Position numbers and translations under genes: made by a program. This document shows, piece after piece, positions 24,001 to 27,000 of a stretch of DNA of 64,000 nucleotides (position 1 is its first letter; the number at the start of each line of letters is the position of its first letter). A model generated the notes under the pieces. It saw only the letters and a list, made by a program, of their open reading frames with translations. It searched no databases and had not been told where the DNA came from. Source of the stretch: Macrostomum lignano (taxonomy: Eukaryota); assembly GCA_002269645.1 (NCBI GenBank), contig NIVC01001739.1, positions 1 through 64,000 on the forward strand, written 5' to 3'.

Positions 24001-27000
24001 CCGATGTCTCATTACCCTTTATGACCCGATGTCTCATTACCCTCTATGACCCGACGATTCATTACTCTCCATGACCCGATGACTCATTATCCTCTCTAGG
24101 ACCCGATGACTCATTACCCTCTATGACCCGATGACTCATTATCCTCTCTATGACCCGATGACTCATTACCCTCTATGACCCGATGACTCATTACCCTCTA
24201 TGACCCGATGACTCATTATCCTCTCTATGACCCGATGACTCATTACCCTCTATGACCCGATGACTCATTACCCTCTATGACCCGATGACTCATTATCCTC
24301 TCTATGACCCGATGACTCATTACCCCCTATGACACAATGACTCATTACCCTCTATGACCCGATGACTCATTATCCTCTCTATGACCCGATGGCTCATTAC
24401 CCTCTATGACACGATGACTCATTACCCTCTATGACCCGATGACTAAATACCCTCTATGAATCGATGACTCATTAGCCTCTATGACTCATTATCCTCTCTA
24501 TGACCCGATGACTCATTACCCTCTATGACCCGATGACTCATTAGCCTCTATGACTCATTAGCCTCTTTGACTCATTAGCCTCTATGACCTAGTACACAGT
24601 CACATTGCCAATATGAATGAGAATTCTAAATATTGTAGCCAACCAATCCAAAAGCACCCAAAAGGATTTAAAAAGCACACAATAATCCTGCACGACAACC
24701 GGGTGAGCACAGACCTCTGCCCTGCTCAGGCTCGGGCAGGATGATGCTGAATCCTATCAACTGTTCAATTCTTGACCAGCGCTGAAGTCGCTCCTGAATG
24801 TCCAGCTTTACTTTGTCGGCGAATTCTCTGCGGGCATTGAATAAAATTTAAATTTTATTGTTTTCAAAGCTTAGCTGAGCTTAATTCCAGGTTAATGTTG
24901 GTTTATGAAATTATAGAAAATTATTGTAGCCAGCGAAAGTTAGTGTTTTAGTGTTAGTGTTAGTGAGTGCTTTTTGTGGTTACTGAGCTCAATGCCGTGC
25001 GACCAGCTATGTTGATGAAGGAGGCAGGTTCAGGTTATCTGAGGGTTCAGGTTATCTGAGGGTTCAGGTTATCTGAGGGTTCAGGTTATCTGAGGGTTCA
25101 GGTTATCTGAGGGTTCAGGTTATCTGAGGGTTCAGGTTACCGGACGGTTCAGGTTTATCTGAGGGTTCAGGTTATCTGAGGGTTCAGGTTATCTGTGGGT
25201 TCAGGTTATCTGAGGGTTCAGGTTATCTGAGGGTTCAGGTTGTCTGAGGGTTCAGGTTATCTGAGGGTTCAGGTTGTCTGAGGGTTCAGGTTATCTGAGG
25301 GTTCAGGTTATCTGAGGGTTCAGGTTACCGGATGGTTCAGGTTATCTGAGGGTTTAAGCTATCTGAGGTTTCAGGCTACCGGAGGGTTCAGGCTATCTGA
25401 GGGTTCAGGCTATCGGAGGATTCAGGCTATAGACATCAGAGGCTGAGTTTCAGGTTTCAGACACAAGATGCATTATATTCGGTACTTGGGTGCTTCACAC
25501 GATTTCAATAAGTAAAAAGCGCCACTTCAGCCACAAATTCTAAGCGATAAAACCATGACAACTCAGTAATAAGAAACTTGTAGCACAAAGTAAAAAAAAC
25601 AATGTTAAGCCAAAGCGAAGCAGCTCAATTGAGCGCTCACTCGAGCTCTCTTACTTAGCCCTAACAATGTCCTGCTCAACAATGTCCACCATCTCAGCCG
25701 AGTCGAAAGCATTGCGAAGCAAGCCAATGACAGAGTATTGCTTGCGTTTCAGCCTATCCAACTGGAATCAGACAGTTCAAACAAATTCTGTGAATTATAG
25801 TGCTACTGAGCTAGTCTGCCTACTGTAAGTAGACACCTAGGCTAAAAATTGATTTTCTCCGAATAAACATGCAATTTGGCAATTTAATAATAAACTAAAA
25901 TTAATTCTAAAAAGAATACAACATATTGATCGGAATCAATTGTATAAAATAGCAACAAAACTATGAACAAATAAATGCAGATTTGCTAAACATTTTGTAC
26001 TAAAATGCTAAACAGGGTACAAATAATAGAAGACAACAATTTATAAATATTAACTAAGTGAAGAGGGGAGCGAGACAGATTGGTGACCTTCAAATGTACC
26101 CAGCCAAGGCTATGCTGGTCTCCAGCTGGTCGAACGAGCCGCAGTGGCTCAGGCGGAATCCGGCAAGAAGGCCCGTGCGCTTCTTGGTGAGGCGGTTCAG
26201 CTTTTGTTGGGGAAGCAAATTTATGCAATGGGAATTTTGTTTAAACTGGGGTGCGCTCAGCTTGCAGAATAAATATCCCTGATTACACAAGTGCCGTCAG
26301 AATAAAACTTCCCAAATCCCAACAATTTGAATCCCAAATACCAACAATTTGAATCCCAAATCCCAACAATTTGAATCCCAAATCCCAACAATTTGAATCC
26401 CAAATCCCAATGACTGAATCCCAAACCCAGAATTCTAAATCCCAACACCCATAATCCCAAACCCCAACACCCCGAATCCCTAAAAACACGAATCCCAAAC
26501 CCCAACACCCCGAATCCCTAAAAACACGAATCCCAAACCCCAACACCCCGAATCCCAAACCCCAACACCCCGAATCCCAAACCCCAACACCCCGAATCCC
26601 TAAAAACACGAATCCCAAACCCCAACACCCCGAATCCCTAAAAACACGAATCCCAAACCCCAACACCCCGAATCCCAAACCCCAACACCCCGAATCCCTA
26701 AAAACACGAATCCCAAATCACAGCCCCAAAAAGGACAGAATCCACATTGCAGCACCAAAGTCAGCATAGAAGCGCAGAGCTACAAAAGCTACAAACCGAG
26801 ACTCACCCCTTCGGAAGCCTTCAGCAGCTGTTCCTCGGCCTTCAACCGGTTGGCATTGCAGTAGCGCAGCTCAGTCTCGTAGCTCAGCTGCAGCAGATGT
26901 TGCAGCTCCGCTCCGCCAGCGCCGCAGAAGCCAACCGGCTGCTGCAATCGAGCCGTTTGATCCAATAGCACTCGCAACCGGCTGACCTCCTGCTCCGCCT

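Follow-up and report, generated by a model that had tools for sequence, protein, structure and literature searches.

A tandem pair of frame-incompatible SOAR-tip exons in a STIM gene of Macrostomum lignano: candidate mutually exclusive splicing of the Orai-contacting segment

Can a single STIM gene provide two versions of the segment with which the encoded sensor contacts Orai? The question is raised by a STIM gene of Macrostomum lignano on the minus strand of contig NIVC01001739.1 (assembly GCA_002269645.1), the first 64,000 nucleotides (nt) of which are referred to here as the window. A first-pass annotation of this DNA had proposed that two adjacent exons, 7a and 7b, are duplicated and mutually exclusive versions of the SOAR/CAD tip. 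The borders and frames of all exons were read directly off the minus strand of the window, and they bear out the proposed arrangement of two exons of 101 and 107 nt with AG/GT borders and equal phases between the exons that end with KASEG and begin with EFADKV. The earlier exon numbering (6, 7, 8) also agrees with the exon model of the full gene. The relevant features are the following (a slash marks an exon border):

18014..32134, minus strand: coding span of the STIM gene, based on database models mapped to the minus-strand exons, the match to PAA64567.1 and Pfam
26807..27139, minus strand: exon 6, end of coiled-coil 1 (CC1) and first SOAR helix; phase-0 end ..LLKASEG (..ctg aag gct tcc gaa ggg/), donor gtgagt
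26201..26806, minus strand: intron between exons 6 and 7a, mostly a minisatellite (26310-26717) with periods of 22/38/60/120 nt
26100..26200, minus strand: exon 7a, 101 nt, canonical-type SOAR tip of 34 residues; acceptor ccaacaaaag/CTG, donor GCTGG/gtacat
25762..26099, minus strand: intron between exons 7a and 7b, 338 nt, 30% GC, non-repetitive
25655..25761, minus strand: exon 7b, 107 nt, Macrostomum-type SOAR tip of 36 residues; acceptor ctgattccag/TTG, donor GCTAA/gtaaga
24828..25654, minus strand: intron between exons 7b and 8, carrying a 17-nt minisatellite (25027-25430)
24712..24827, minus strand: exon 8, second long SOAR helix; cccgcag/A GAA TTC GCC..

Both 7a and 7b are entered in phase 0 and leave two nucleotides over, their lengths each being 2 modulo 3, and the first nucleotide of exon 8 completes the split codon (G after the 'gg' of 7a, K after the 'aa' of 7b) before the frame continues with EFADKV. 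If both exons are included, 7b is read as G-W-I-G-stop, i.e. translation ends after four codons, and if both are skipped exon 8 is misread and a stop follows after about 20 codons. The claim that the use of both or neither breaks the frame thus holds, and the two lengths make 7a and 7b arithmetically exclusive. An insert of the type known from STIM2.1 does not describe 7a, because its addition to 7b shifts the frame; it is a replacement for the full-length segment. Judged by frame, length and domain profile, 7a and 7b encode one and the same part of SOAR in two alternative versions. This part runs from the end of coiled-coil 2 (CC2), where the basic patch is located, across the apex into the start of coiled-coil 3 (CC3).

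The identity of the gene is clear. Positions 17000-33000 of the window match NIVC01001739.1 at 100% identity across 16,001 nt, and the gene corresponds to BOX15_Mlig032436g1, whose product PAA64567.1 (P0164, 715 amino acids) agrees with the residues encoded in the window. In the exon model, a signal peptide exon (at 32134) is followed by those for the EF-hand, SAM, the transmembrane segment and CC1, by exons 6, 7 and 8 and by the C-terminal tail (to 18014), so that the exons read as a full STIM architecture with signal peptide, luminal EF-hand and SAM, a single transmembrane segment, CC1 and SOAR. The annotated product has Pfam matches to EF-hand_STIM1 (PF25578) and SOAR (PF16533). Based on these two matches, the transmembrane exon and the alignment to the human SOAR structure 3TEQ (see below), BOX15_Mlig032436g1 is a genuine STIM gene. 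Near-identical proteins were found in our searches in Macrostomum lignano only. The DV1 line, from which the genome derives, is partly duplicated and repeat-rich (PMC5730564), and two further copies of the gene are located on NIVC01000070.1 (L002, 757695-779231) and NIVC01002618.1 (L004, 87863-112105). The three copies, including that of the window (L003, 15014-35116), are 1-2% diverged overall, with intron divergences ranging from 0.1 to 5.7%. Moreover, M. lignano harbors at least two additional divergent STIM paralogs, namely B (P0006, BOX15_Mlig030611g1, locus L001), which is about 49% identical to the window gene, and C (P0016/P0071; UniProt A0A1I8IKQ9 / A0A1I8FRP6). The notion of the first-pass annotation that the diversity of STIM sensors arises here by splicing rather than by gene duplication is accordingly off the mark.

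A direct BLASTP comparison of 7a with 7b returned no alignment, the peptides being too short and too diverged, and the homology of the two tips was therefore argued via the SOAR profile and the set of canonical tips. Exon 6 joined to exon 8 through 7a scores 90.4 bits against Pfam SOAR and through 7b 90.2 bits, compared with 38.7 bits for the version with neither exon (gathering cut-off, 25 bits). Replacement of 7a by its wrong-frame translation, its reversal or a shuffled version yields 46.2, 44.1 and 49.0 bits, respectively, which corresponds to a gain of about 41-46 bits for the authentic peptide; overall, either exon contributes about 45 bits. On its own, each exon matches only SOAR (7a at profile positions 41-70, E=0.0011), and both align from profile position 41 to about 70-73. 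The tip segment could be delimited in 132 of 152 STIM proteins, which comprise the relatives retrieved by an exhaustive HMMER search and the M. lignano models. It has a length of 34 residues in about 125 of the 132, and the only tips of 36 residues are those of the Macrostomum 7b type, of three nematode proteins and of one further sequence. Against 113 distinct tips of animal STIMs, 7a reaches a mean BLOSUM62 score of 47.1, as opposed to -29.6 +/- 10.3 for 2000 shuffled versions of 7a with a maximum of 20.7, and 7b without two of its residues reaches a mean of 52.7 against the canonical tips. Each exon shares 13/34 residues with the pan-animal consensus, and just 9/34 are identical between the two.

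The structural comparison assigns the two forms to different length classes. In the HMMER alignment the 7a form of SOAR matches human 3TEQ ungapped over 96 residues (65.5 bits, E=4.9e-17), and the 7b form requires a two-residue gap (E=2e-15). The 7b form aligns ungapped with 3TER of Caenorhabditis elegans and scores 41.1 bits, compared with 31.5 bits for the 7a form. In single-sequence AlphaFold models, which are given low weight here, both forms appear as a hairpin of two helices that turns within exon 7 (mean predicted local distance difference test score of about 80); a Foldseek search with the single-sequence model ranked 3TEQ first with a weak match (E=0.05, template modelling score 0.42). 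These models and the Foldseek search are too coarse to tell the 7a tip from the 7b tip.

At the level of single residues, the alignment to 3TEQ places the Phe and the His of 7a (LFGTFHVAH) on human F394 and H398. Exon 7b of the window has Leu and Phe at the corresponding positions and a two-residue insertion near the S-alpha-3 region. The residue assignments of the first-pass annotation are hence reproduced. Its further suggestion of a STIM1-like and a STIM2-like tip is matched by Phe in 7a and Leu in 7b of the window, but the position is not fixed. Among the 113 animal STIMs, 65 have Phe and 34 have Leu at the F394 equivalent, and the apex residue is Phe in the 7b exon of copy L004 and in the 7b-type exon of paralog B. 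The contrast between a STIM1-like 7a and a STIM2-like 7b is accordingly weak. More robust differences, as judged from the alignments, are the near-invariant His, which is kept at the H398 equivalent in 106/113 animal STIMs, retained in 7a and lost in all three 7b-type exons, and the two-residue insertion of 7b. Moreover, 7a and 7b differ at about 25 further positions. In mammals, the swapped segment contains the basic patch, the apex F394 and, in its S-alpha-3 region, the gating interface between STIM1 and Orai1, and the apex position (F394 versus L485 in STIM2) tunes the efficacy of Orai1 gating (PMC7795233). Given that the segment carries these gating elements, it is reasonable to infer that the 7a and 7b tips would differ in Orai coupling. 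Both exons of copy L004 (16039-16139 and 16474-16580) deviate from those of the window, i.e. by the Leu-to-Phe exchange at the apex of 7b (..VIGLFRNAF..) and by a Gly-to-Arg exchange of the last residue of 7a (GCTAG/gt), which therefore ends with ..ALAR and is nearer to the animal consensus K/R.

Which of the two exons is used? Exon 7b is contained in all in-frame protein models, namely the GenBank entries PAA91868, PAA64567 and PAA56454, which represent one protein per gene copy (P0158, P0164, P0165), and the UniRef models P0002, P0003, P0166 and P0167. It is likewise part of P0004 and P0005, two UniRef models garbled by frameshifts. The GenBank annotation was built from RNA sequencing (RNA-seq) data via StringTie/TACO (PMC5730564), and 7b therefore predominates at the level of whole animals. 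Because the TACO setting was --isoform-frac 0.75 and a further filter was applied to alternative transcripts (PMC5730564), a minor 7a isoform would stay out of the annotation. The sole model with 7a is A0A1I8JNC4 (P0001), which contains 7b as well and translates 7a in the wrong frame. This reading requires a 7a exon that is 1 nt longer, a 7b exon that is 1 nt shorter and a downstream AG of exon 8. P0001 was rejected as transcript evidence for 7a, because it is best explained by a predictor that compensates for assembly indels.

The splice sites of 7b are strong (ttccag/, i.e. a CAG/ acceptor, and /gtaaga), and the acceptor of 7a is weaker than the CAG acceptors of exons 2-6, 7b and 8. In each of the three gene copies, 7a and 7b are both flanked by AG/GT dinucleotides. 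An additional element is located at the donor of 7b:

25590..25680 (91 nt), minus strand: imperfect palindrome, predicted to form a hairpin that buries the 5' splice site of 7b; -31 kcal/mol, z=-2.7, 2/200 shuffles

The core stem of this hairpin is retained in L002 and L004 (-27.3 kcal/mol), and the donor region of the 7b-type exon in paralog B folds into a different, much less stable structure (-16.3 kcal/mol). The hairpin may be a regulator of splicing and is regarded as a lead only. A conserved docking/selector pairing was not found at the 7a/7b locus, where the local hairpin at the 7b donor was the only structure of this kind. A complementarity of 13 nt with 12 base pairs (92%) between the interior of 7a (26124-26136) and the intron upstream of exon 8 (24996-25008) was dropped, since a match of this quality is expected about by chance in a region of 2.2 kilobases; the pairing of these two stretches would loop out 7b.

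The age of the exon pair can be estimated with the help of the paralogs. The paralogs A (the window gene), B and C have the 7b type of 36 residues in common, including its RKQ motif and an (A/S)(E/D)MV insertion, and their 7b-type exons share 16-22/36 identities among each other. The identity of 7a to any 7b-type exon of the paralogs amounts to only 9-10/34. The presence of the 7b type in all three paralogs and the distance of 7a from all of them are indicative of a duplication that predates the paralog split. Between A and B, 20/44 four-fold degenerate sites are identical (0.28 expected by chance), which corresponds to about one substitution per site or about 0.5 per lineage. The equivalent exon of paralog B is the following:

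L001 13981-14087: 7b-type exon of paralog B, 36 residues, Phe at the apex

The intron between exon 6 and this exon (L001 12815-13980) consists purely of a minisatellite and contains no SOAR-like frame. Judged by its composition, paralog B has lost 7a. The repeat unit of this intron has an estimated length of roughly 40-60 nt.

In the three copies of the window gene, the order exon 6-7a-7b-exon 8 is found in separate contigs with their own substitutions and repeat lengths, and 7a is intact in each of them, with an open frame, the canonical 34 residues and AG/GT borders. The changes of 7a among the copies are a synonymous one in L002 and G34R in L004, and nothing else. The GC content of 7a is 0.64 and that of its third codon positions (GC3) 0.85, which tops every other measured exon of the gene; the immediate flanks of 7a have a GC content of 0.34-0.42 and the surrounding introns one of 0.30-0.42. 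In a simulation of 0.5 neutral substitutions per site, with no indels modelled, the score of 7a against the canonical tips dropped from 47 to -3 +/- 12 and the frame stayed open in 30% of the runs. The intactness of 7a in view of its age and of this simulation excludes a long neutral decay, and the exon could be a dead duplicate only if it has been silenced very recently. Exon 7a is thus probably functional rather than dead, and we infer that it is spliced into mRNA.

On balance, we lean toward the view that 7a is a maintained minor or regulated mutually exclusive alternative to 7b. The proposed scenario would start with an old tandem duplication of the exon for the hairpin apex of SOAR/CAD, an exon that spans the basic-patch end of CC2, the Orai-contacting S-alpha-2/S-alpha-3 turn and the first part of CC3. 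Owing to its strong splice sites, 7b would be the default exon, and 7a would be a minor, condition- or tissue-restricted replacement that needs its own activation or the repression of 7b. Exclusivity would be enforced by arithmetic, because double inclusion and double skipping lead to an early stop and presumably to nonsense-mediated decay, and the hairpin over the 7b donor may help to switch between the two exons. The products would be two sensors that are identical except for the Orai-contacting tip, the 7a form with a canonical tip of 34 residues and the equivalents of F394 and H398, the 7b form with a derived tip of 36 residues, Leu and Phe at these positions and two extra residues near S-alpha-3. 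The more far-reaching proposal that one STIM gene thereby yields two sensors by regulated mutually exclusive splicing, a human-type Phe/His tip and a nematode-type 36-residue tip, which differ in coupling strength or in the preference for Orai partners between cells, is tentative and in our estimate has slightly less than an even chance of being correct.

Several observations weigh against an active role of 7a as a replacement exon. There is no in-frame protein or transcript model with 7a in the protein collections searched, alignment-based repeats of the searches included, the constructed exact 7a isoforms are absent from a collection of 15 billion proteins, and all three transcript-based models take 7b. 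The acceptor of 7a is a weak AAG/ with a purine-rich stretch at -8..-1, and its donor is /gtacat. Paralog B functions without 7a. The hairpin at the 7b donor is not exceptional, because 28/583 windows of the gene reach the same or a higher stability. With a single synonymous and a single non-synonymous change in 7a, and just 1-2 changes per exon, the ratio of non-synonymous to synonymous substitution rates across the three DV1 copies lacks the power to reveal selection. Finally, the age argument assumes common descent of the 7b-type exons in the paralogs and no later transfer of 7a. Three of these points, namely the exclusive occurrence of 7b in the in-frame models, the weak AAG acceptor and the complete loss in paralog B, which documents that a STIM gene of this lineage can do without the exon, would equally be expected if 7a were a recently silenced relic, i.e. 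the ancestral canonical exon that was long used beside or before 7b and is no longer spliced, with 7b being constitutive as in paralog B. We consider this unlikely. None of the three copies of 7a has acquired a stop, a frameshift or a splice-site loss, its GC3 is still 0.85 and shows no drift to the intronic 30-42% GC, and against SOAR it scores as high as 7b, the exon in use. The silencing would have to be very recent in relation to a synonymous divergence of the paralogs of about 1, and a minor isoform would escape the annotation pipeline.

Less probable still is a scenario in which 7a is used in mRNA but not as a swap. It could serve as a poison exon, which together with 7b would result in ..IALAGWIG-stop, decay of the transcript and less STIM, or as an alternative last coding exon with the end ..IALAGYI-stop, whose product would be truncated before the second SOAR helix and possibly be dominant-negative. 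Both readings follow from the sequence, the open reading frame 26090..26290 ending with ..SIALAGYI and a stop, and the downstream intron is AT-rich (30% GC) and has an ATTAAA. However, neither function would require 7a to have precisely the canonical length, to exit in the phase that fits exon 8, to retain the conserved His and Phe or to match SOAR in full up to its last residues. The predictor model P0001, which holds both exons and might be quoted in favor of this explanation, reads 7a out of frame and is best attributed to assembly indels. The partly duplicated and repeat-rich DV1 genome (PMC5730564) finally calls for considering collapsed haplotypes, a mis-assembly or a chance open frame in the case of 7a. 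An artefact of this kind is highly improbable, because three independent contigs, each with substitutions and repeat lengths of its own, have the same exon order, and because the similarity of 7a to SOAR is far beyond that of shuffled sequences. Their mere 9/34 shared residues also distinguish 7a and 7b from collapsed alleles, and the mis-assembled haplotype of which the first-pass annotation had warned is thereby ruled out. We thus retain a maintained, mutually exclusive 7a as the preferred interpretation. Taken together, what the first-pass annotation observed is confirmed, and its interpretation is borne out in part.

How does this exon pair compare with known systems? The closest counterpart is the mammalian STIM2.1/STIM2-beta variant, in which the cassette exon 9 inserts VAASYLIQ into CC2 of CAD/SOAR, so that splicing alters the Orai-coupling domain of a STIM protein from a single gene, as proposed here (PMC7795233; PMC4411291). 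As stated in the first-pass annotation, this insert occupies the equivalent upstream junction, i.e. after ..KEG in mammals and ..KASEG in M. lignano (PMC7795233). STIM2.1 adds eight residues to an otherwise unchanged SOAR and its use is proven, whereas M. lignano would exchange the whole segment of 34 or 36 residues and the use of 7a is that of a candidate. The pair of STIM1 F394 and STIM2 L485 resembles the Phe of 7a and the Leu of 7b in the window, but the analogy is loose, given that Phe and Leu are not fixed and that about 25 other differences and the insertion are added. Both tip length classes for which SOAR structures have been solved, represented by human 3TEQ and C. elegans 3TER, are present in one M. 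lignano gene. Exon 7b resembles 3TER in its RKQ motif and in the lost His, features that are probably convergent, and nematodes and vertebrates have only one form per gene. Mutually exclusive exons that arose by tandem duplication, for example those of PKM, have in common with 7a and 7b the adjacency, the near-equal lengths, the equal phases, the same encoded structural element and the safeguard of an incompatible frame. Unlike the known pairs, 7a and 7b are here known from the sequence and from in-frame models that contain 7b only.

The described STIM variants STIM1L, STIM1A, STIM2.1/beta and STIM2.3 are cassette or terminal-exon events (PMC7795233). In the literature searched we found no mutually exclusive exon and no tandem exon duplication of a STIM gene, and a review of STIM isoforms from 2020 does not contain the term 'mutually exclusive' (PMC7795233). 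If the preferred interpretation is correct, 7a and 7b would be the first mutually exclusive exons described in a STIM gene and would represent a third route to tune Orai coupling, beside the two genes of vertebrates (STIM1, STIM2) and the inhibitory cassette of STIM2.1. They would also provide a natural tip-swap, and structure-function studies could draw on two matched SOAR variants. Since M. lignano is amenable to transgenesis (PMC5730564), isoform-specific reporters and knock-downs are feasible. If 7a is silent, the locus would be a clean case of an exon duplicate between replacement and loss, for which paralog B, where 7a is already lost, would serve as the control.

Some observations beyond the exon pair concern the remainder of the gene and its surroundings. 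Nearly all STIM introns (window 20002-31817) are each filled by a minisatellite of their own, with periods of 12, 17, 22-38, 23, 25, 30 and about 14/54/294 nt. The minisatellite lengths vary among the three gene copies and account for hundreds of gap columns; they fit the reported content of 15% simple/tandem repeats in the genome (PMC5730564). The acceptor of exon 6 is a NAGNAG motif (cag/cag) at 27139/27136 (window 27136-27141), and the RNA-seq-derived proteins differ by one Gln at the start of this exon (..GLKQEQASH in P0158 and P0165 versus ..GLKEQASH in P0164), hence both acceptors appear to be in use. In the STIM homolog P0047 from the HMMER search, an extra 25 residues, VSTKKNVLFNSTNTIPSSPSPKSEQ, are inserted precisely at the junction that precedes the tip exon, where the mammalian STIM2.1 insert is also located; a cassette exon or a retained intron of another species could account for them. 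The upstream neighbor of the STIM gene is a large gene on the minus strand (window 41025-51822) with spectrin repeats and two RhoGEF-PH modules, which on the basis of these domains we would call Trio/Kalirin-like. An exon at 62700-63391, also on the minus strand, encodes the C-terminal domain of an FGGY carbohydrate kinase (92 bits), and the same open frame continues into a (CAGA)n-type repeat that is translated as LSVCLSVC...

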